DNA of 63,420 bases, filler included, from Lenisia limosa (GCA_001655205.1; 7 parts of 7 records of this genome joined end to end with filler, not necessarily neighbours in it); one strand, 5' to 3'; shown: positions 3,341 to 18,116, counted from the whole stretch's first letter. The notes: a model not told the origin generated them from the letters alone. Translations and numbers: made by a program.

Positions 3341-4639
3341 CTACTATTGCTTTCTTCCCCCTTCCCTGAAATCACACAGAGGTGTGACAGACTGAGCCTG
3401 GTNNNNNNNNNNNNNNNNNNNNNNNNNNNNNNNNNNNNNNNNNNNNNNNNNNNNNNNNNNNNNNNNNNNNNNNNNNNNNNNNNNNNNNNNNNNNNNNNNN
3501 NNNNNNNNNNNNNNNNNNNNNNNNNNNTATATATTTGTTTCCCAGATTTTTAATGTGTATTGTTTCTCTTGTTGACAACCCTCATCACGGCCTGGCGCGC
3601 TGTTGCCTTGGACACCTCGCTGGGAGAGTCGTCCGTCATCGCCATCGGCAGCCTTTTGGAGGACGGGCAAACGGGCACTGCCCAGACAAAGGTAAGTGAT
3701 GCATACAGTATTGAGGTATTGATCACTCATTGTAACCCATCAAGGTGGACGCCACCCCTTCGGTTGATAGAAGCCATATGCCTTTCTTCTGCTCAACTGC
3801 GGTTAAGAAGTCTCACCATTTTTGAACTCATTGAGGGCCATCCCTACCATTCACAGTATCTGACGATCCAGTTTTTTGGAGATACATCACTCTGCTCAAT
3901 GACGCTATTTTCATCTCTTTCAACGCAAATTGAGATGCCGAAGATCGAACAGAAATCCAAGCTCCAGCAAGCTGCTGCGCTTGACATTCAAAACATTAGA
4001 AACTCCCTCAAGAAGGTACAAACAATATTGAAACGAAGAGTACGGGGGAATCATATCACCCTGATTTACACCCCTTTACTTCCCCCTGTTCATTCAGGCA
4101 GATCTGCCCTTAAAACACACACACACACTGGCTGCAGTAAATCCCCCTATCCTTTCCCTCCAATCTGTTAACAACCCCAGAAACGTTCATCACGCATTGT
4201 TTACATGGCCTTCAGGCCAAATGGTAAGAACAAGAGCTATGTATGGGATACTCAGGGAAGATCTATGCAAGGCTGATATACTGAGGATGAAGCAGCCTAA
4301 TTTACGATCCATTCCTTCCGCCATACAAGTAACTGATATGTCTATCTCTGAGGCCGACAAAATGAGGAGAGGTGGTTTGAAATCGATTAGAATGATGCGT
4401 AACTACGACCATTCCTTACTACCATCTTTACCGTGTTTGGGTTAATTGAGGGGTGTTTTGAGTCCTTTCAAGACTCTAAAGCATTGTCATCCAACATAGT
4501 TGTTCTCCTGACACTGTAAATCATGGTTGAACAAACATTCAATACTCGTATACATATCTACAGTATATGTACTATCTATACTATATCTATCACATTAAAA
4601 ATTAACACTTGTGAAAAAAAAAGAAAAAGTACTGGTTGT

Positions 4640-5578
4640 TTAAAACCGCGAACATGATTAAAACTGCGAACAAGCCATAAATCGCTTCAAAACACCCTTT
4701 TTAGTGTGAAATTCGGCAGTTTTGAGTACTAGACTATCAATAATATCAAAACAAAGAAATTTTGAGCAAAAAGAAGAAAAAATAAAATGAGGAGATAAAA
4801 AAATCGAAAAAAAAAGATCTTTTGATCAGAATCGAACCTGGTCGGGGTCACCCAGTTTCCTTTACGCGAAAATATTTCTTGAAACCCCCCTTCTTTCAGA
4901 ATAATAGCATTTTGAGCCTATTAAAGTGCCCCACAATAGAAACGCAGATTTTTAAGGAGAATTCGAATTTGAAGTCCATTTTTGGAGAAACTGTAGTGAT
5001 TTTGAGGTATTTAAGTCAACTTTTGTGACGGTTTTTTCAAGAATTTTTCTTGTTCAGTCTATAATGGAGCCAATGGACGAAATAGACGTCTGATTAAAGC
5101 ATATGCTGCGTCAACAACCCATTTACGTTCTGGAACGGCACAAAAGGTCAGAGTCAAATTCGCTTGATTAATTAACATCTTCTATCATATTTTCGCCCAT
5201 TTATGGGTAATTTACGCTCATTTTTTGCCCAATTTGTCTCGTATTCTCTACTTAAATGCCTTTAGGTTACTCAAGAGTGGAAAAAATCAAATCTGATGGT
5301 GCAAGAACGTCTTTACTTTATCGCAGGGACATTCTAGGCCCATAATCAGTGCTTTTATTGTATTTCACATGAAAAATTGAAGTACCATGAAGGTGGTATT
5401 TTGCATGTATGTTGATACCCCTGCCTATTCTTCTGAACAAAACCCTGTATAAAGGAGCGTTTCGGGCGATAATTTTCAAAAAAATGCGAAAGAGGCGTAA
5501 ATAAGTAGCCTATTGGCTCAAAAATTGAAAGAAAAGCTTCCTTTTTGTTCGCGGTTTTATTCATGTTCGCGGTTTTAA
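4640..5578. mobile_element. Putative non-autonomous DNA transposon (~940 bp) with ~34-bp terminal inverted repeats
   Basis: ttaaaaccgcgaacatgattaaaactgcgaacaa (4640-4673) is the near-exact reverse complement of ttgttcgcggttttattcatgttcgcggttttaa (5545-5578). The interior is AT-rich with no recognisable ORF. No TSD established. Confidence 0.6.
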
Positions 5579-6269: not shown

Positions 6270-6560
6270 TCTAGGTGGTCTGAAACTCCTTGAAAAGTGT
6301 GACAGATCAAAGCTTGGGTTATGAAAGACGCTTTCCACATTGTCCCACTACGCACCTCAAACTTCAACCGAGTCTGATTCAAGACCCCATCCGGCATCAC
6401 TGGTCACTTCAAATGCCTACCAATGGGTTTGAAGGACTGTCTTATCATCTTCGATCTCATCTCCGTTGCCTCCAACGAAGTTGTCAAGCTCCGCATCATG
6501 AACAGTCACATACTGAATGGTGACAACGATCTCGAGCATCACGTCATTCCATTATCATAG
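6270..6560 (+). pseudogene. Central reverse-transcriptase fragment of a YR (DIRS/Ngaro-like) retrotransposon
   Basis: MKDAFHIVPLRTSNFNRV*FKTPSGITGHFKCLPMGLKDCLIIF matches the D-x-K-D-A-F ... L-P-(F/M)-G-L RT motifs. The YxDD region is degraded or deleted. Confidence 0.75.
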
Positions 6561-6639
6561 AAGGGTATAGGAAAATAGGCATGTATATGAATATATGCAC
6601 CACGCTAGTGAAATCTCATAACTAAGTTAAATTGAGAAC

Positions 6640-7689
6640 GCGCCTCAAGCATGTAAAAAAGGACATCCTGAAATCCGCCATAAGCAAGACCTCGGTGAAA
6701 ACATACAAGTCCGCATCAAGTCGTAATTGGACTGCTGCGAGGAAGTGAAAACGAAACCACTTCCCAATTCAGAAGTTAGTCTATCATTGTTAAGGTAACA
6801 TTATACAAAGTTTTGAGGTTGAATTATGTTTGGCCTACATCTCCCTGCGCATTAAGGAAAGACAGATCTGCTCAGGTGTACACCCACTACGCAGCCATAA
6901 ACGGCCAGCCTCACCCCATCATCAAGGGACGTTATGCAGCCCAAAGGTATAATGATTACGAGTCCATACCTTACTAATTATCCAGAATGATTCTGAGCAT
7001 CAACAAGGCCAACAAGTCCAAGCCAGTGAAACAGGCCCCCGAGATGTCCTCCACCCAGTTTCATAAACTCGTACGCACTCGCCCCCCAACTGGCCCAACA
7101 AGAAGAAGAATATCCTCATCCGAGCCATTTACCTCGCAGTACTACGGAATCTGTCGCATGGGCGATCCCCCCCCCCCCCCCCNNNNNNNNNNNNNNNNNN
7201 NNNNNNNNNNNNNNNNNNNNNNNNNNNNNNNNNNNNNNNNNNNNNNNNNNNNNNNNNNNNNNNNNNNNNNNNNNNNNNNNNNNNNNNNNNNNNNNNNNNN
7301 NNNNNNNNNNNNNNNNNNNNNNNNNNNNNNNNNNNNNNNNNNNNNNNNNNNNNNNNNNCCCTCCTTGACCATGATCCCGTCCGTGATCTCCGAGCGCTCT
7401 AAGCCCAGTCCGCCGCTAACCCAGCCAATACCCACAGAGCTGTCTTCTACTGGTATGACACAGGAACAATCGTTTGGACTAGAGCCATGTACAGCATCTT
7501 ACGCAGCGAACTAAAGGAGTCAGGAATGGACGACAAAGCTGCTGGAAAGTTCACCATCCACTCACTCCGTCACACTTGTGCTACCGTCCTTCGCAACGAA
7601 AAGAAGAGATCGCCTGAAGCAGTAATGCAGGACAGTGGATGGGGCTCTCTCCGACAAGCCAAGAAATAAATGCACTAATGAGGTGTTTA
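6640..7689 (+). pseudogene. Tyrosine recombinase of a YR retrotransposon, copy A, with two predicted introns
   Basis: N-terminal SAISKTSVKTYK..PLPNSE|VELCLAYIS; box I IRAIYLAxYYGICRMGD (Arg 7155-7157); box II FTIHSLRHTCAT; SGWGSLRQAKK*MH, where the catalytic Tyr codon is TAA (7667-7669). Introns at 6775-6817 and 6947-6985. Interrupted by an N gap. Confidence 0.9.
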
Positions 7690-8367
7690 AGTGTTTTTTA
7701 TTTATTATTATTATAATCTTCATTTTATACAATGCTTTCCCCAGGGACAAAGCGTAATTAACTTGATTTCAGCGATTTGACCATTATCCACAGAGTTTAA
7801 TTCCCCGCATCCCGGAATTATTAACATATCTAGAAGTGGTTAAAGTCACAATGTGTGAAAAAAATGATGTTTATGTTTTGTCAATAATAGCTTATAGAGT
7901 TGGAGTTTGATTAAACAGAGTTTTCAGAAATACTATAAGTCAAGCCAAAATACAAGCCAACCGAATAGCCTTGCCGTAGTGGAAGTAGCACAGCGCGGTG
8001 AGGGTGTTGGGGAAGGCAAGCCTGAAGTGATCAATGGTTATACCGCGGACGAAAATTCTTCACCAGTAACGACGGTGACACGCTGTGAAGAAATCAGAAC
8101 CATCCAAATAAAGTACTTGCCACCGACGACCAGGTGCTGTCAACGTGGATGGTGTCACACTCCTAATGGGGTCGGACAGCTCGAGTAACAGCTCAAGCTG
8201 GCTGGCGGACATGATGTGAAGAGTCTATAGGCCCAATGTTGTTCTCGATCTCCTTAGCCTTACGCGCACGTTGGATAATGCCAGCATGCTTGGGGGTGCA
8301 TATATAAGCCGAGGACTTGTCGTACACATGCTTAATGCCGGAGGTGATGGATAAGCTGTAAAAAAAA

Positions 8368-8647
8368 CACGATTTAGCTGCAAAAGTGTGGTTAACATCG
8401 CTCTTGTTCAAGATATGGAACAACAAATATTGAACAAACAACCTCGAGTGTCAATGTCTCAATTCCTCCTTATTACGTACTAAGGGGGGGAGAAAATGAC
8501 ACCCACAAAGAACAATCATATCCAAAAAAAAACGGTTATGCATGAAATGGTCATAATTCTACCAGATTCAATCAGGGTTCTCTGAAGAATTAAAGAGTCT
8601 ATTTTCAAGCTCAGTTCACTTGTATTTAGTGAAACCCCCTTTTACAA
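8368..8647 (+). repeat. Terminal repeat 'A1' of the YR retrotransposon, directly upstream of the gag-like ATG
   Basis: Colinear homology to the reverse complement of 14570-14784 (cgatttagctgc.aaagtgtggttaacatcg...ggttatgcatgaaatggtca...cagttcacttgtattta), with an extra ~55 bp in this copy. Confidence 0.85.
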
Positions 8648-8658
8648 TATTGCCCACA

Positions 8659-9801
8659 ATGGTCGCTGGTACACGTAATACCAGTGCTAGGAAGCGTACT
8701 GCTACCACCCCCAAGCCTATTGCCTCCCGTATCCACTTGACAAGAAGAAAGCTAAGGACGTCGTCTTGGTTTAGAACGCGTCGAGAAGGCAGCCAAGTCG
8801 GCTCCTTCTCAGCAACAACAGCAACTTCCTGCTCCCGTCTCCTCAAGTGGCGACTTCGCCTTGGCCCTTATCAAGGAGTTGAAGGTTCGCCTACATTGTC
8901 AGATAAAGACTAGCAGATGATGTTTCAAGCATTGTACCCAATGCAAATCAATAATGCCGAAATCCTCACGTTTCAGAACAACTCCGAGCTCCGTGAGGTC
9001 TTTGGTGAACTCTACAAGTCCTCTGACACTTCATCCTCGAGAACACAGCTCTTGACTTGCGTTCCGGCAGGCGAACTAAAGGGTGCCAACGAGGTCATTC
9101 ATGTTACTGTAAGGTCTCATATATTTGATTAAAAATAATGAATAAGGCTGATAAGTTAATCAATCTGTTTATTGTAATATTAAGCAAGAACTTTCCTTAT
9201 AAGGAAGGTGTGTTTCTCAGATGATTAGTGTGGATCATCCTAAGAAATTTTGTGAACCAAACTCACCCACACAGAACTATCAACGACATTCTCCCGGATA
9301 TCGAGTCCCTCTACATCCAGCATGTCATCTCTACTATCTTCCGCGCCCTCGGCCAGACCTCCACCCTCGTTGACACCAACATCTCTGCTATCGGTGCCCT
9401 CATTGAGGAAGGCTTCGTGTCTCAGGCCGCCAATCAGATCAATGCACCCCCTTCGTCGATTACTCTCTCGAGGACAGTCCCTTCTTCGCGGCCGCCCCGG
9501 TTCTGGCGCCCATCTCTTCCAACAAAAAGAAGTATGTGGGTATTACATATATTTTCACATATCAATACAGTATGTTGAATAATCATGTACGTATGCGTCA
9601 TTGAAATGTCGTGGAAACGATCATGTATACATTCTAACATATTTAGCAAGCTTATCTGCTGCGACTTCAACTCCGATCGCGGTTGCCGCCGCAACTCCTG
9701 TCCTCGCAACCACTCCTGTTTCTTCTGTATGCAGGCGGGTCTCCCCAAGCAGGACTGCCCCAGGCGTAAAAGCTAAATGCTATTTTGTGATGGTGTATTG
9801 A
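8659..9801 (+). pseudogene. gag-like first ORF of the YR retrotransposon, intron-containing and decayed
   Basis: Starts 12 nt after repeat A1 and precedes the RT. Removing intron 9532-9646 (GTATGT...CTAAC...TTTAG) joins two ORFs in frame. A further donor lies at 9109 (GTAAGG). The call is positional; no diagnostic gag motif was recognised. Confidence 0.55.
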
Positions 9802-9958
9802 TGCAACTCCCTTTTTCTTCATTATCAGGCTGAATAAAATTTAATTATCTGTCACCGAATTGGGATATAATAAGGGAATCTGAAGCCAGAAGACAATAGA
9901 GTATTACACCCCCGAAGCAATAAATAACGTAATAGATTCAACATTCAACGACCCCAAC

Positions 9959-10470
9959 GTGCACCCGGCTCTGGCAGATTACTCAATACACCACCCGAGC
10001 CACAAAAGCGTGAGAGACTCCGCCCTAGATCATGAGAAGATAAGGCAGCTCAACACCAAGGGGCTAAAAAGAGTAAACTGTAAGCTTTTTAGGGACCTTT
10101 TCAAAAATGAATTGTCCCTTTTCAATTTCCAGCATATTGAAGTTCCGAGCTATCCTGGAATACGGCGACGACCTCTGCATTGACCCCAATGCACCCTTCT
10201 CCCGCCACACCCGCAACTGGCCTTATGCTAATGAGCACTCTAAGCTTATTGATGAGTCCATTAAGGCCCTCAACAACAAGAATGGTACTCCCCCCACCCA
10301 CGAATGACATTCATGTCAATCCACTGGGCATCGCCACAAGAGAAGTCCTCCACCTGAACAAGGTCAAACATAGGCTGATCCTGGATGGCAAGGCCCTATC
10401 TGAGTACACCCTCGGTGCCTTCTTCGGCCTCGACCGAACCACCCAGCTCTACAACATGCTGCAAGAGTGA
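9959..10470 (+). pseudogene. N-terminal reverse-transcriptase region of the YR retrotransposon
   Basis: FRAILEYG...NWPYANEHSKLIDESIKAL...DIHVNPLGIATRE...KHRLILDGKALSEY matches the (S/N)PLG..K..RLI(L/H)D..LN pattern of DIRS/Ngaro RTs. Possible intron 10073/10080-10132. Truncated at ~10470. Confidence 0.75.
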
Positions 10471-11049
10471 CAGAAATCAAGAACCAAACACCTGATAAGA
10501 ATTCACGAAGTAAGGCTGCTTTGCAAACGACCAAAGAGTATTTGAAAAAGTAACATTTTCGAAAGTTTGAAAAGAGGAATTCAAAAAGAAAAGCTGCTGC
10601 TAAAATAGTAGAATAAATGGGTAACCAAGTTCAGTTCACTTTTATCTAATTTCGTAACAATATAATTGTCTTTTTTAGTGTTGTTGTGATGTAAATCTCA
10701 GTCGAACTTTCCTTCTGATAAGTCTTTTGTGCCTTTTGTATCATATTCAACAAGAATATCAAATGTCTATTGGCGCCCTATCTGAGTGTGAACACGGCCA
10801 ACTATTTTTTTGAAGAAACCCCCCATTTGCCACGAAAGCTCAATTACACTCATCAAGCTTCTAGAATATGGGGATGTAATCACTCTACTTATAAATATCT
10901 TGATCATTTTAAGCTGAATTGTATATTAAAATGATATTTTATTACTTGTTGATTCGAAAAGCACCTAAAGATAATCTTCAAAAAAAATGTATTGAAACAA
11001 GACTAGCGACCGCGAGCACGAGTGCCCACCCCCTCTTTCCGCGAACTCA

Positions 11050-12010
11050 ACGACCTCTACTACGAGCAGTTAGAGGAGAAATTTTATCAACAATCACAGC
11101 AGCAGTACCTCTTCCTCTACTTCTGCCCCACGACCGCGAGTTCTTCCAATAGCAACATCGTTCACAATAACACCAGCACGTTTACCTTCCTCAATTCCAA
11201 CAGCATCATTCAGCCGCTTTTTCTTCATTCTGCCTTCTTTAGCTTGATCAGCCTCTTCTTGAATCCGTTTCTTCACAATTTCTCTGAATGCTTCCTCCTC
11301 TGTTACCAGAGCCAACAGTGGGATATTTTGAGTACAGCATGGAATTATTAGCCCAAGGAAGTTCACCTGCTTCAGCACAAACATGATGTCTTTCAAGTAA
11401 CTCTTTGGTCTTCAAATCAGCCATATCCTTGAGTTATCCATATCACCATGTTTTGATTGCTCCAAAAACTTTTGTATCAACACGTCACAATATAAAGAGT
11501 AACCATATTGGTATCAGTATCTTACGATCAGTTTTACATTCTCAAAAGATTTTGTAAAACTTTTCTTTAAGATCACCAAGGCGAAACACTTCGATATTAG
11601 TATCATCTGAGGCATCGTTGAAGGTTTCATCAGCATTGATGAAGAGCATTGCATTAAGTGTATTCTTAAGAGAAACCTCAAATACAGTTGCAAAATATTG
11701 CTGTATTTTAACAGACAGCTCCTCACTAATATATGATGATACAAGATAGCGTGATTTCTACAAAAATTATAATACAAAGCCTACTCCAAATATATATTCC
11801 AATCTTTGTGCCTTTCCATGAAGCCTTTAACCCAACAGTCTGGAAAATATTGGAACATGCTTTTTCAGGGAAAAGAGTCTTGTATCTAATTTCACCCCAG
11901 AGAAACTAAATTTATTGAATGCAAAGCTTTTCAATAATGTCAGATTTAGTGACAGCAACATCATTATAAGTAGCATGTAGAAGACCAGCCAGTAGAGTAA
12001 GCTCAGCTCT
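11050..12010 (-). mobile_element. pogo/Fot1-like (Tc1/mariner superfamily) transposase remnant
   Basis: LLAGLLHATYNDVAVTKSDIIEKL...CWVKGFMERHK (CENP-B-type HTH, ~11805-11990); LFINADETF (first catalytic Asp, 11623-11637); charged C-terminus LVTEEEAFREIVKKRIQEEADQAKEGRMKKKR. Most of the DDE domain is missing. No TIRs found. Confidence 0.65.
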
Positions 12011-13450
12011 AAGCCCCACGGAGCCTTACAAGCCCCATAGAGTGCCATAGAGCCCCTTCCAAGCTCCACTTGTGTTCTTTGTGCCATAGAATAGAATAGA
12101 ACCTTCCTAGATCTATTTAAACTATAAAAAAATTCCTTTCTAACTAAGGCAAAAAAAAAACGCTATGCGTTTGCATTTGCCACTCGCTGCGGCATGGTAT
12201 TTAACGAAACCAATTCACCAATTCTTACCTGTTCTCACCGCCTTTTTTACTGTGTTTGCTTTGAAGAAGTTTATTGTAGTAGAATAGCGGGAGGGGCTAG
12301 AAAAAAGAGGAGAAAACAGGAACTTCACAGGGCACAACGGAGCCCCAACACTCACTTCTCTCAGCGGTGCTGGACCACAACCAGAAGATGGGAAAGGTGG
12401 GCCTGATGTAGTGCACTTTAGTATCTTCTCGTTCCTCTGAAAGTCCGTCAAAAACTGTCAGACTACCTTCGTCATATCGTCTTCTGCCCATTGCCTAGAA
12501 GATCTTCAACATGCAGGTCTGTTTGGATCGTTGTTCTTTTGATATCAACATTTAATGTTGTCTTCCATCTTGTACTGACTTTCTTAGCTGCGCTTTTGGA
12601 GAAGGACTGTGTTTTCCCTTGGTGAAGATTGTACCACTGTCAACGTCCACGTTCTTAACGAGATACATTCCTTCGCCAATCAGGATTCACCTTGCACTTG
12701 TGTCGACTTCGTTCAGCATGCTATGTGCCGTGTGTAATGGCTATGAAGACACGTGTGTGCGGTACTGCGGCTGCCGTTGTGAGAGCTCGTGAGAGGGATT
12801 ACATTTGTTGCTTTACGTTTGTTGCTTCAAATTGATTTTTGTTTATTACACCTCGCTGTGATTCTCTCATTCCCTAGTTAGTCAGAAAGAGGCTGAGAAG
12901 GAGGTCATCAAATGGTATGTGCTGCCAACGACTGTGCGAGGCTCTCTCTCTTCCATCTCCAACACCATCAAGAGACCCCGTACTGCCAAGGCTAGCAAGT
13001 ATCTTTTCAACTCTTTAAAATTCCATCCGAATTTGGCAGTAACACTTCAGGGCTGATCGCCGCAAGAAGGGACGTCAGGACCTTGTTGCTCTCGGTCAAG
13101 CAGTTCAGCTGAATGCCAAGGAGACTGCTCCTCCCCTACATACCCTGTCCCTCTTCCACCTTTGCTCAGTGAAGGAGTATGCTTCCCTTCGCGAGATTTT
13201 GCATGCCAACTACTAGGAGGACCCCAATATTGTCTTCGATATTGCCAAGCTAACCTGGTGATGCCTGAAAGTTGTTATCATCATCGATATATTAATTAAT
13301 ATTAATTGCCCGGGGCTCTAATTTTTACCCATAATTCCAATGTAGAGACAGGGCTGTTTATACGAGACAAAAATTATCTCGAGTCCCACCTTTAACGCAA
13401 AATCGAAAAAAGTACTGCAACAACTTACAATTGTTTTTTAAAACACAAAC

Positions 13451-13591
13451 CTTATCTTGAACATTTATGTTTCCACCATGATTTGAAAGGAAGAGTATTA
13501 AAGGACTATGTCCATGAAGAGCTGCCACATGTATTGGTGAGAGCCCATTTCCGTCCAGTACAGAGGGATCTGCACCGGATGCCATTAGCAT
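13451..13591 (-). CDS. Ankyrin-repeat exon (AKR1/ZDHHC17-like ANK segment)
   Basis: ttttag|MLMASGADPSVLDGNGLSPIHVAALHGHSPLILFLSNHGGNINVQDK|gtttgt, 141 nt, phase 0 at both ends. A weaker upstream exon ends at 13817. Confidence 0.8.
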
Positions 13592-14365
13592 CTAAAAAAA
13601 ATGGTTAAAACAAACTTCAAATATGATGATTAAAATATCACAAAAAAACGAAGAAAAATCTGTTTTCAACACAAAATACGTTTTCAAAATGGTTATGTAA
13701 CAGTATTATATGGTAATGCCCTTCTTGGACAAATATATTTGCTTTTGACCTCAAAAACTGAAAAAGCCAGATCCATTACTTCTTTGCTATAAAATTGACC
13801 CAGTCTGACGACTAACTCTGCAATCCCTCTTGTCGCACTCCAGCGCAGTCGGGGCAAGCAAAGTCATATGTCCTCAGACTTAAACCCGTCTTATGCTACC
13901 GTTCCACGAAGGACCAGTGCAAAAAAAGAAACCCCCCACCAAATTAGGACCTGATAAACATTACGGGAAGAGGAAAGAACAGCCAATACTACCGAAGAAG
14001 AGAAGTTCATCAGTACATTGGAAACATCTTGTGCTTGGTTTTGCACATATAACTGGGAGACAGCAAGCCTCATGTTTGCAACACCAATCCAAGATTGCTT
14101 ACATGGATACCGAGGAGTTGTATTTACAAAGCTAAAGAGGTGAGGTAAACGAGTAGAAAATGAACACAAACAGAGGCTGATTAGTACATAGTCTGTTGAT
14201 AAATAGGCTCAATCTCACCCAATTCCTTTTGTCATCAGAACTTACTGGGTCGTCAACACTTCCAAAAATTTACTTGAGAAGAAAATCTATTTGTCAGCAG
14301 GACAAAAAACTTGGAGAAAGGAATTTTTATCCAATGTTACATATTAATATTGTATTACAATGAAG

Positions 14366-14928
14366 TTTGTATTTTTCTTCTTGTTATTGCACACAAACAT
14401 TCTAACTTGCTTCTGTGAGACTGTGGTAAGGTTACACGTAATTGAGTGTGGTAAGATCTCTCTAGATCCGAACCAAAGCCCCCATAGAGCCCTAGTATGT
14501 ATTAATACATAGGTGGCACAAAGGGGTTCGCGGAGGGAGGGGTGCCGACAATGGGCTTAGAGGTTTTCTGTAAAAATAGGTTCTCACTTAAATACAAGTG
14601 AACTGAACTTGACCATTTCATGCATAACCATTGGATATGATTGTTCTTGTTTGTGGGTGTCATTTTCTCCCCCATTAGTACGTAATAAGGAGGAATTGAG
14701 ACATTGACACCCGAGGTTGTTTAATATTTGTTGTTCCATATCTCGAATAAAAACGATGTTAACCACACTTTCGCAGCTAAATCGAGTTGTATTCTTCTTG
14801 TTATTGCACACCAATATTCTAACTTCCTTCTATGTGATACTGTGGTAAGGTGACACGTAATTGAGTGTGAAGAGGAGAGCTATGCTAGCTTTTCTAGTCA
14901 GATCTTCTGAGATCCGGACCAAAGACCC
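14366..14928 (-). repeat. 3' terminal split direct repeats (B1-A2-B2) of YR retrotransposon copy B
   Basis: Read on the minus strand after the YR: B1 (14928-14785), A2 (14784-14570, homologous to 8368-8647), a ~90-bp spacer, then B2 (14480-14366, a direct repeat of B1 sharing ttcttcttgttattgcacac...ctgtggtaaggt.acacgtaattgagtgtg...agatccg.accaaag). Confidence 0.8.
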
Positions 14929-15215
14929 AAAATAACCCAAATTAATTACGTTCCACAATATCTTTTACCTCCTCCCATCCCACACCTCCCAAGCCACCCA
15001 ACCTCTTGACCTCCGCACTTTTAGTGTTCTCAAGACCATCCTCCACTCCACCCTCCGTACCAACCTCATCAAGAAGGCCCCTACTGACGTCTCCAACGCC
15101 GCTCACAACCGCTGCGTCGCCATTGCCGCATGCCTCGAGGCCTTCCATACCGCCAAATCTCCCCAGAAGATCAAAAGTGCTTTCGCTGCTGGGGGTCTTG
15201 TTGTCAAACACCTCA

Positions 15216-16260
15216 TTAGTGTATGTACTTCTTGGCTTGTCGGAGAGAGCCCCATCCACCGTCCCGCATAACCGCTTCAGGCGATCTCTTCTTTTTGTTG
15301 TGAAGGGCAGTAGCAAGAGTGTGACGGAGAGGATGGTGAACGAAGGACGGTAGTACGAGTGTGATGGAGAGTGGATGGTGAACTTTCCAGCAGCCTTGCC
15401 ATTCATTCCTGACTCCTTCAGTTGTCCTGACTATTGTTTCAGTGTCAGGCCAGCAGAAGACAGCTCGGTGGGTATTGGCTGGGTTAGCGGCGGACTGGGC
15501 TTAGAGCGCTCGGAGAGCACGGACGGGATCATGGTCAAGGAGGTGAGAGGATTCGTAGGTAAAGGTGACGGGGGAGTGAGGGGAATTCTTGGTAAATTTC
15601 AATGTCAGCTCATCGTCGGCGGACTGGGCTTGGAGAGGACTCGTAGGTAAAGGTGACAAGGGAGGGAGGGTTATTCTTTGTGAATTTGACTGTCGTGCTG
15701 GCCTCATCGTCATCAAACTGGATGTTGTTGATGGTGGGACCTTGGTGGTTGGGGGGAGGAATCGCCATGCGTCAGATTCCGAAGTAACTTGCGAGGTAAA
15801 TGGCTCGTATGAGAATATTCTTCTTCTTCTTGGGGCCAGTCGGGGGGCGGGTGCGTACGAACTTGTGAAACTACGGGGGACGACATATCGGGGGCTTGTT
15901 TTAATGGCTTGGTCTTGTTAGCCTTGTTGATGTTCAGGAAAATCTGGATAACTAGTAAGGTATGGACTAGTAATCACTACCTTTGGGCTGCATAACGCCC
16001 TTTGATGGGGTGGGGCTGCCCATTTATGACTGCGTAATGGGCGAGAGCGGAAACATAGCCTGAGCAGGTCTGTCTCCCCTTCATGCGTGGGGAGATGTAA
16101 GCCAAATATAACAACCTAAAAGTTATAATGCTACTCTAACAATAATAAACTAACGTTCTCTTCTGTAATGGGAAGTGGTTCCATTTTCACTTCCTCGCAG
16201 CAGTCCAAGTACGACTTGATGCCGAACTTATACATACGTTTTCACCCAGGTTTTTGCTTA
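15216..16260 (-). pseudogene. Tyrosine recombinase of the YR retrotransposon, copy B, with the same two predicted introns
   Basis: EPLPITEEN|..YLAYISPRMKGRQTCSGYVSALAHYAVING...ILIRAIYLASYFGI*RM...GGWGSLRQAKKYIH** (Tyr 15225-15227). Introns at 16154-16116 and 15980-15944. Frameshifted, with internal tandem duplications. Confidence 0.9.
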
Positions 16261-18116
16261 CAGTCTAAACATAAGAAGAGCAGAACATAACGTTGGAGAG
16301 AAGTTAAGCAAGGATTTGATTTGAGGAAACAAATGCAGAGATTTGCCTTAAAATAGGATGAATCTGTTTTTAAAGCTTACGATGGTGACGCACGCAGCAA
16401 GACTTGCAAGCGTTGCAGTTCTTGGCATTGCACGAAAGGAAGGCTTCAGTGGTGTTGTTAGAGGACCAACACGGGTCTGAAGGGTGTTGACATGCCCATT
16501 CTTAGGATGCTTGGCCTTCTTGAGCTTCTTGAGAAGAACAAGTAGAGCAGTCCCGCGAACAATTCCGGCCAAGAATTGCGTCAGTTTTGGCAAATTTCTT
16601 AAGCTGTGGCATGTTTAACTCTTGATTCTTTACTGATGAGCATAAAAGTCAAAAAAATCAAAACTTCACTAAAATACAATATTAACATGGGGTAACATTG
16701 CTCAAAAATTCCATACTCCGAGGTTTTTGTCCAATAACCACCAAGACAGTCTTCAATTGTTCGAAATAGTATATGTTTAAAATAAAAAAGATGAATAACG
16801 AGAAACTTTTGTTGAAACAGTTTATTTTAAAAGGGTTTCCTTGACTTGCAATGATAACCTGAACGACCATTAAGATGGCTCAGTCCTTTTTTGATTTTGG
16901 AAAAAATAATTAAAGTGTGGTAAGTAATTAAAATGAGCTTTCTGGCGCAGGGCAGTTTTTCGTATAAAACAGCCCTGACATGGAAATTCTAAAAATGGGT
17001 GGGGAATGTGTTTAACCAAGGCTATCTGAGGCTTATACAACAATATTTCGACGATGAGTAGGTGTTGGTTTTGCGTACTTGGGTGCAAAAGTGTGGTTCA
17101 CATCGCTTTTATTCGTAATGGAAGGAATGATCGTCAAATTGGAAATATGCTACATTAGTAATTGCTTTGATTTGTGAAAAGATGCAAGAACGTGTTTGCC
17201 TTCTCAAACTAGATTTTGAACAATTGTTGCTTGATTTTGGTGAATTTTGAAGAAAAAATTTAAATAATATGTAGGTGGTACAGATTTTCATACCCCTAAT
17301 CACCTAATCATGCAACAGTAAACTCTTAGCCTATTTTGGGGATATTTGCAAACAAACTGAAGGGGGGTTAACAAGGAATCCTTGTGTCCAAAAACGAAAG
17401 AAAAGCCCTATTGGTTTTCACAATATTTTTTATATTAAATAATATGGTGGGTTAGAATTCCGATACAAGAATCTGCGACGGGAGGAGGAGTAAAACGAAG
17501 AAAAAAAAAGAATAGTGGCNNNNNNNNNNNNNNNNNNNNNNNNNNNNNNNNNNNNNNNNNNNNNNNNNNNNNNNNNNNNNNNNNNNNNNNNNNNNNNNNN
17601 NNNNNNNNNNNNNNNNNNNNNNNNNNNNNNNNNNNNNNNNNNNNNNNNNNNNNNNNNNNNNNNNNNNNNNNNNNNNNNNNNNNNNNNNNNNNNNNNNNNN
17701 NNNNNNNNNNNNNNNNNNNNNNNNNNNNNNNNNATCTACAAAAATTAGGCATGGTAATAAGTATGGGAGGGGCGGCCGGGGATGAAATATGGGAGTTAAT
17801 AAGGAGAGACAACAGTTAATGTATCACTTGTTGAAATTAAGGTGGTTCTGTAGTTGTTTGAATTGGCAAATTATTTGAAGCCATGTGTGCAGTTTTGAAA
17901 AACATTTCGGAATTAGGGTCGTCAAAAACTTCAAAAAGGTTTCTGCACAGTTCCTTCCTCATATGAATCAAACAAAGAGGATATTATCACATCTTGGATT
18001 TAGCAAGATCAAAAACTAATTTGACTCTATCAAGGCTCATTTCCTTGTAAAACATCTTATTTATTGTTGGTGCCAATTGAAGAATATTGAAACCCCTCCT
18101 CCCCCTGACCCCTTAC

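Follow-up and report, generated by a model that had tools for sequence, protein, structure and literature searches.

Decayed Ngaro-like tyrosine-recombinase retrotransposons with intron-like segments in gag, RT/RNase H and recombinase genes in Lenisia limosa

A mobile element that is copied through spliced RNA is expected to lose its introns, and single introns have been noted in some retroelements that integrate by a tyrosine recombinase (YR). Penelope-like elements keep spliceosomal introns after retrotransposition, which has been described as highly unusual (PMC8557442), and they are treated as the exception to intron erasure (PMC8557442, PMC4209133); proposed explanations for the retention are an antisense template and a sense template that stays unspliced (PMC3846280). 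A survey of DIRS and Ngaro elements in fungi makes no use of the word "intron" (PMC3783388). Here, we describe a YR retroelement family from Lenisia limosa (GCA_001655205.1), found in a stretch of 63,420 nucleotides, filler included, in which seven records of the genome are joined and which is referred to as the window. The window probably contains decayed members of an old Ngaro-like YR retrotransposon family, the gag, reverse transcriptase (RT)/RNase H, and YR genes of which are split by introns that were kept by the copied template. A set of seven introns across all three genes of a YR retroelement is a feature for which no description was found in the literature. A preliminary description of the window had proposed a family of YR retrotransposons, all copies of it dead, the coding regions of which contain several introns of the spliceosomal type, and this core reading was borne out.

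The architecture of the element is Ngaro-like, an assignment based on gene order, split direct repeats, and spacing. The element consists of a repeat A1, gag with a CCHC knuckle, RT/RNase H, YR, and a terminal block of repeats B1-A2-B2. This is a layout of the Ngaro type, and split direct repeats of the form A1..B1-A2-B2 are a signature of reverse-transcribing DIRS, Ngaro, and PAT elements (PMC13465315). RT/RNase H and YR occur in one element, as in YR retrotransposons in general (the DIRS order in the broad sense). Order of genes, repeats, lack of a methyltransferase between RT/RNase H and YR, and unrelated flanks are all shared with Ngaro-like elements; by contrast, at least seven intron-like interruptions over all three genes and a very divergent YR set the family apart from them. 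DIRS1-like and PAT-like elements also combine RT/RNase H with a YR of the Phage_integrase type, and PAT-like elements have split direct repeats as well. However, both carry a methyltransferase after RNase H, where the elements described here have approximately 170–450 bp before YR (330–450 bp from the end of RNase H to the start of YR in family 1 and 170 bp in family 3). This spacer is too short for a methyltransferase, and no domain search of it gave a match; PAT-like identity was rejected on this spacing. DIRS1-like elements have, in addition, inverted terminal repeats and an internal complementary region, which were not seen here; the terminal repeats are direct and split, and DIRS1-like identity was rejected too.

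Other described systems share fewer features with the family. The YR gene of Cryptons encodes a SAM-like domain at the N terminus and often contains introns, but Cryptons are devoid of RT, RNase H, gag, and split direct repeats, whereas here RT is linked to YR in many copies, RT/RNase H and gag accompany YR, and split direct repeats are present. The Crypton assignment was therefore rejected. Penelope-like elements are retroelements with retained introns, as the segments here would be; however, they have an RT of the telomerase-like clade, a GIY-YIG endonuclease instead of a YR, pseudo-long terminal repeats (pLTRs), and usually one or a few introns, compared to seven across three open reading frames (ORFs). 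The integrase of the Lenisia element is a YR, the lone RT match in the PDB is to the Ty3 RT and is weak (E 0.21), and a Penelope-like identity was not accepted. In retroviruses and long terminal repeat (LTR) retrotransposons, unspliced full-length RNA is the genome, and some proteins are made from spliced RNA. However, their gag-pol is translated from unspliced RNA, whereas in the family described here the translation of gag, pol, and YR alike would require splicing.

Copies of the element and linkage of RT to YR

The piece examined is contig C8344, from an assembly of 49 Mb that is fragmented into 11,727 contigs and contains gaps. A second public assembly (ENA ERZ3820729) includes contigs L087 and L088, which are 100% identical to C11398 and C6886, longer, and free of gaps. 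Two decayed copies of the YR gene lie on opposite strands of the window, copy A at 6544–7688 (+) and copy B at 16300–15206 (−). Self-comparison aligns 6681–7176 (+) with 16260–15751 (−) at 81% identity and 7360–7688 with 15543–15206 at 74%. A YR query had 36 or more matches across the genome, at 68–93% identity, and the two copies belong to a repeat family of no fewer than 30 fragments. The pieces of the element in the window, apart from gag and pol, are as follows.

6320–6548 (+): RT fragment of copy A, domains 3–4 (KDAFHIVPL..LPMGL), 88% identical to RT positions 195–422 of contig C6216
6581–6774 (+): YR exon 1 of copy A, possible ATG at 6581, likeness to copy B from 6681, private TAA and frameshift
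6775–6817 (+): putative YR intron 1 (I5) of copy A, 43 nt, GTTAGT..GAG, GC content 0.28, phase 0; 16154–16116 in copy B
6818–6946 (+): YR exon 2 of copy A, VELWLAYIS..YVSALA..NGQPHP..GRYAAQR
6947–6985 (+): putative YR intron 2 (I6) of copy A, 39 nt, GTATAA..TACTAAT..CAG, in-frame TAA, GC content 0.33, phase 2; 15980–15944 in copy B
6986–7669 (+): YR exon 3 of copy A, split by an assembly gap at 7183–7358
7689–8360 (+): DNA downstream of copy A, the first 77 bp common to other copies, 7767–8360 low-copy
8361–8643 (+): repeat A1 of the split direct repeats, marking the 5′ end of another partial element; 26 DNA-run contigs lose likeness at 8360–8364, and copies adjoin different flanks
14366–15205 (−): 3′ region of copy B, with B1 at 14869–14792, A2 at 14788–14610 (to approximately 14451), B2 at 14450–14375, and the element end at approximately 14366–14372
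15219–16260 (−): YR copy B, with exon 1 at 16260–16155, putative intron at 16154–16116, exon 2 at 16115–15981, putative intron at 15980–15944, and exon 3 at 15943–15219

The YR has an N-terminal SAM-like part (..YVSALA..NGQPHP..), Box I (AIYLA.YYG.CRMGD), HSLRH, and GGWGS. In copy A, the arginine of Box I lies 5′ of the assembly gap, and HSLRH and GW lie 3′ of it. The catalytic tyrosine is present in copy B (KKYIH) and is replaced by a stop codon in copy A, which also has a private 11-nt deletion in exon 2 among further private frameshifts. The C-terminal YR pieces match Pfam Phage_integrase with E-values of 2.6e-4 (7487–7666, copy A) and 3.8e-4, both sub-threshold. The gap at 7183–7358 follows a poly-C run, and its two sides match copy B and other copies collinearly, with strand and order preserved, which makes continuity plausible. 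Between the matching points of the gap, copy B has 207 nt, compared to the 176 estimated N. The gap is most likely a simple unread stretch inside exon 3. In copy B, exon 3 contains a private tandem duplication of the ..KFTKNSP.SPVTFTYESS.. segment (15545–15606 and 15633–15694 (−), 84% identical).

RT motifs were located at approximately 10300–10400 (NPLG..RLILD) and at 6320–6440 (KDAFHIVPL..LPMGL). After its RT fragment, copy A jumps through an internal deletion to the spacer preceding YR. Fuller copies are open through RT domain 5 (ISIYFDDVFG) and domain 7 (LGVLLDT), after which come a thumb-like part and RNase H (IWCTDAS..INVLEL..CDN). An RT piece of family 2, a sister family described below, matches Pfam RVT_1 with an E-value of 7.6e-6, and homology links the RT piece of family 1 to it (E 3e-7). 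The best match of the family-1 piece in a PDB sequence search was the Ty3 RT mentioned above; the RT palm/thumb and RNase H pieces had no match in the PDB sequence search, and the short family-1 RT, RNase H, and gag pieces had none in Pfam. Look-alikes in the Atlas were RVT_1 clusters (0.93) and RT_RNaseH/RVT_3 clusters (0.96). Two candidate interruptions of the RT were dismissed. An extra intron between domains 4 and 5 was rejected, as locus L067 is open through to ISIYFDDVFG and the shift in C6216 is a private 13-nt deletion; a frame shift at a poly-C tract before NPLG is indel noise only, with no intron.

RT and YR belong to one element. RT/RNase H, a spacer of the family-1 length given above, and YR follow each other on one strand in contigs C6675, C10141, C8371, C11024, C4005, and C11398. 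It could be argued that an intron-containing Crypton lies beside unrelated RT fragments, or that the two YR copies arose by segmental duplication, and indeed, no single intact element in the window contains both a YR copy and the N-terminal part of RT. However, the order RT/RNase H then YR recurs on one strand with constant spacing in at least six other contigs, and the YR copies of the window are only 74–81% identical and have nothing in common in their flanking DNA. The ends of the element adjoin different sequence at no fewer than seven loci for A1 (5′) and at least eight loci for B2 (3′). The linkage in other contigs together with the differing flanks refutes both alternatives, which are scarcely credible.

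Repeat A measures approximately 190 bp or more at the 5′ end and repeat B approximately 78 bp; the order at the 3′ end is B-A-B. The B-A junction and the second B recur in L002, L004, L012, L014, L019, L024, and window copy B, and A occurs alone at 5′ ends.

These results modify some of the details proposed in the preliminary description. The positions claimed for the RT motifs were correct, and both motif blocks are present; they are, however, halves of one RT, as the parts from the N terminus (to 10467) and from the middle (6320 onward) are approximately 23 nt apart in C6216, C4048, C5765, and C6177. The claim of a full YR motif set holds for the arginine, HSLRH, GW, and the tyrosine of copy B but not for the tyrosine of copy A. 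A linkage of RT to YR had been deduced from shared terminal repeats. The linkage is real, but the two repeats in question (8366–8553 and 14788–14610, approximately 190 bp, 87% identical) both represent repeat A but belong to different copies, one being A1 of the piece that bears gag and the other A2 of copy B.

Two sister families were identified. The RT, RNase H, and YR of family 2 lie on one strand of locus L031 (C10742, 1665–3530 (−)), with the N-terminal YR domain deleted; its YR matches Pfam Phage_integrase with 33.5 bits, which is above the threshold. Family 3 has a nearly intact YR at L032 (C11548, 119–1019 (+)) and L087 (9484–10306 (+)), with one stop codon where family 2 has arginine; among the three families, it is probably the youngest. 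A search of 1.84 billion representative proteins with a profile built from the YRs of families 2 and 3 identified distant YRs of eukaryotes, from molluscs and a glomeromycete. In one mollusc match, YR is joined to a GDSL/SGNH hydrolase, a combination typical of animal Ngaro elements. The YR of the family is highly divergent, with a handful of close relatives among the proteins searched, those traced being from the same organism. A word-indexed homologue search with the 206-residue family-3 YR ORF found no match within the length band of the search.

Intron-like segments in gag, pol and YR

Alignments of multiple copies identify seven intron-like segments, designated I0–I6, of which four are in gag, one is at the 5′ end of pol, and two are in the N-terminal domain of YR. 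The gag and pol parts of the window are arranged as follows.

8659–8774 (+): remnant of gag exon 1 (ATG at 8659) and of putative intron I0, with a private deletion in the window copy
to 8774 (+): remnant of putative gag intron I0, mostly deleted; in fuller copies (L041, L011, L051, L037, L043) approximately 190 nt, GTTTGC..TTTAG, phase 1
8775–8884 (+): gag exon 2, ..ERVEKAAK..ALIKELK
8885–8976 (+): putative gag intron I1, 92 nt, GTTCGC..CTCAC..TTTCAG, phase 0, GC content 0.40
8977–9100 (+): gag exon 3, NNSELREVFGELYK.., 3′ end lost to a private 15-nt deletion
9101–9274 (+): putative gag intron I2, GC content 0.31, 5′ splice site deleted in the window; in other copies approximately 170–200 nt, GAG/GTATGT..CTCAC..CACAG, phase 2
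9275–9531 (+): gag exon 4, TINDILPDIESL..APISSNKK
9532–9646 (+): putative gag intron I3, 115 nt, GTATGT..TTCTAAC..TAG, phase 2, GC content 0.30
9647–9776 (+): gag exon 5, CX2CX4HX4C zinc knuckle and stop codon, H to L in the window copy
9990–10072 (+): pol exon 1, ATA in the window where other copies start with ATG
10073–10132 (+): putative pol intron I4, 60 nt, GTAAAC..TTTCCAG, phase 0, GC content 0.33
10133–10467 (+): pol exon 2, the N-terminal part of RT (ILEYG..IDPNAPF..NPLGIA..RLILD), likeness to other copies ending at 10467

The zinc knuckle of gag matches Pfam zf-CCHC with an E-value of 0.002 (locus L037).

All seven segments begin with GT and end with AG, and each has a CTAAC, CTAAT, CTCAC, or CTGAT motif 8–25 nt before the AG. 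The ends of I5, as tabulated over copies, are GTTAGT or GTTTAT and TTTAG. Every segment carries stop codons or shifts the frame, and removal of the segments, which are in phases 1, 0, 2, 2, 0, 0, and 2 (I0–I6), joins open exon frames. The GC content is 0.45–0.57 in exons (mean 0.53) compared to 0.23–0.40 in introns (mean 0.33), with a switch at every boundary in both window copies. The introns of host genes are similarly short and loosely defined, as judged from tubulin exon spacing and two PRP8 introns: the latter are approximately 140 nt (GTATTT..TTTTAG) and 60 nt (GTAACC..TTTAAG) long, and the gaps between tubulin exons are approximately 45–170 nt. An ankyrin-repeat exon in the window is followed by GTATGT.

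The segments of YR can be compared with sister families and distant homologues. The YR of family-3 locus L032 has open stretches of 36 and 190 codons, which make up 226 codons after the removal of a 40-nt segment, GTTAGC..CTGAT..CACAG. This segment separates ..FPMTDEK from VELWIAEV.. and coincides in codon and phase with I5 of family 1 (..PLPITEEN / VELWLAYIS..). The sequences of the introns at this site are unrelated between L032 and family 1, and that of the L087 copy is different again. In distant YR homologues, the profile match starts at positions 14–20, which are the first residues of exon 2, and skips 16 intron-encoded residues, and the homologues continue upstream of the start of the match. 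In an alignment on 13 homologues, YR exon 1 ends in the column just before exon 2, so that the exon pieces lie end to end. I6 is located inside a conserved ..F(L/I)VKK(I/L)L.G.. helix and leaves no gap relative to the homologues; the site is continuous in families 2 and 3 and in external homologues.

The presence of the segments was surveyed by alignment in 4–10 non-redundant copies per site. I1 (72–99 nt) is present in six of six copies, I3 in five of five, I4 in four of four, and I5 and I6 in ten of ten each. The length of I3 is specific to subfamilies, at 83–128 nt, and the neighboring exons are stable in length. Neither a precisely intron-less copy nor one reading through the segments was seen among the copies examined. 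The seven segments are best described as spliceosomal-type introns, the splicing of which we infer from these signals, frames, and comparisons.

All four intron candidates of the preliminary description were supported, and three more were found, bringing approximately four to seven. The two YR introns had been located to the nucleotide in both copies (6775–6817 and 16154–16116; 6947–6985 and 15980–15944). In copy A, splicing had been said to restore the frame at both introns and to eliminate a TAA; the removal of I6 does take out the TAA, but I6 is 39 nt long and leaves the frame unchanged, and copy A has the additional private frameshifts. The frame-restoring gag segment at 9532–9646 has the GTATGT..CTAAC..TAG signals of an intron and is kept in all five copies that span it. 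At approximately 9109 and at 10073–10132, the frame had appeared not to be cleanly restored. Both are likewise candidates that withstood comparison with other copies, and the frames are unclean because of private deletions in the window copy, of 15 nt at approximately 9100 and of 2 nt after 10132.

Several observations weigh against reading the family as retrotransposons with introns. Every copy is degenerate, and none was seen with all exons open. The assembly is fragmented and gapped, and the window copy is rearranged. The lone polyA RNA run, which belongs to the study that also produced the DNA run, yielded two contigs (7361–7420 and 9354–9440), which are less than 90% identical and both inside exons, with no junction crossed. 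RT and RNase H were assigned by motifs and by sub-threshold or indirect matches. The putative introns of gag and pol were recognized by their splice signals, frames, and composition, and the comparison with outside homologues and sister families covers those of YR. Finally, substitution rates within the family are equal in exons and introns, with indels modestly enriched in introns; therefore, the decay was neutral and mostly followed insertion, and conservation within the family is uninformative on function.

Some of these points would fit a different origin of the segments, as insertions or decay in a non-functional, non-autonomous master copy that was amplified in trans by intron-less autonomous relatives. 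The copies are all dead, their exons and introns have similar substitution rates, and many have internal deletions, by which gag is fused straight to YR (L002, L011, L015), the N-terminal part of RT to YR intron 1 (L008), or the middle part of RT to the pre-YR spacer (window copy A). However, chance insertions or decay do not readily account for GT..AG ends, a branch-like motif, the correct phase, and low GC content in seven of seven segments, for a segment of unrelated sequence at the identical codon of an otherwise open 226-codon frame in another family, or for two YR segments that interrupt conserved motifs without leaving a gap relative to homologues. Moreover, the copies examined included no intron-less relative. 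An origin from a dead master copy is thus decidedly improbable.

Intron retention and the copied molecule

Copies at independent sites all have the introns, and the molecule that was copied or integrated therefore carried them. Most likely, the gag, pol, and YR proteins would be made from spliced mRNAs, and the template of reverse transcription would be RNA that escaped splicing. Three routes can be envisaged: (a) an unspliced full-length sense RNA might be the template, as in retroviruses, with every ORF needing splicing; (b) an antisense transcript might be the template, in which introns would be invisible to the spliceosome; or (c) the element might move as DNA by means of its YR. The preliminary description had deduced an unspliced RNA template with spliced RNA for protein; an unspliced sense template is one of these three routes.

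YRs are able to excise and integrate on their own, and Crypton YR genes typically contain introns. An element with RT, YR, and real introns could thus have spread as DNA, through a Crypton-like circle excised by YR, extrachromosomal circular DNA (eccDNA), or rolling-circle copying, and would have kept its introns trivially. The structure of the family-1 copy in the window (6296–10490) would fit circular or longer-than-unit DNA. Its RT halves neighbor each other in other contigs, which shows that it is circularly permuted or split: the part from the middle of RT to YR (6320–7766) is followed by 594 bp of low-copy DNA and then by A1, gag, and the N-terminal part of RT (8361–10467). The two breakpoints of the permuted copy are neighbors in intact copies, and similar strings of approximately 15 nt, TGACAGATCAAAG and TGACAGAAATCAAG, are present at both outer junctions. 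The permuted copy could be a re-inserted circle, a rolling-circle or longer-than-unit copy, or a chimera of assembly or amplification. However, the permuted copy also includes the 594 bp of low-copy DNA and may itself be such an artefact, split direct repeats A1..B1-A2-B2 are a signature of reverse-transcribing elements (PMC13465315), and RT/RNase H has been kept in three diverged sister families, which argues that RT was used. Spread as DNA is unlikely.

Routes (a) and (b) are favored over (c), because the split direct repeats and the conservation of RT/RNase H in three diverged families argue for reverse transcription; the template that keeps the introns would be one of these two RNAs. It is possible, and we propose it tentatively, that a Ngaro-like lineage of at least three sister families copies RNA that is never spliced, either protected sense RNA or full-length antisense RNA, so that at least seven introns persist and all of the proteins would be produced from spliced mRNA.

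If this is true, intron retention would have arisen independently in another retroelement order beside Penelope-like elements, as a second case, and the family would be more intron-rich than any retrotransposon described so far. How a retroelement separates the RNA that is translated from the RNA that is copied could then also be studied in a natural system. Candidate separators are a packaging signal inside an intron, the nuclear export of unspliced RNA, and an antisense template. Annotation of transposable elements by ORF and domain searches that are blind to introns misses or fragments such elements, and Pfam missed most of the pieces here.

Other features of the window

The window contains further repeats and one putative host exon.

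4160–4551 (+): family-2 YR C-terminal fragment, ending ..GGLKSIRMMRNYDH
4637–5560: interspersed repeat unrelated to the YR elements, 87–92% identical to parts of L004, L033, and L009
676–1830: remnants of another RT, apparently of a different element type, with SLLPCISKGL-like motifs and an RVT_1 match at 1412–1549 (−), E 5e-4
13361–13591 (−): ankyrin-repeat exon (Pfam Ank families, E approximately 3e-7), followed by the GTATGT 5′ splice site

The ankyrin exon is probably part of a host gene or pseudogene situated between element fragments.

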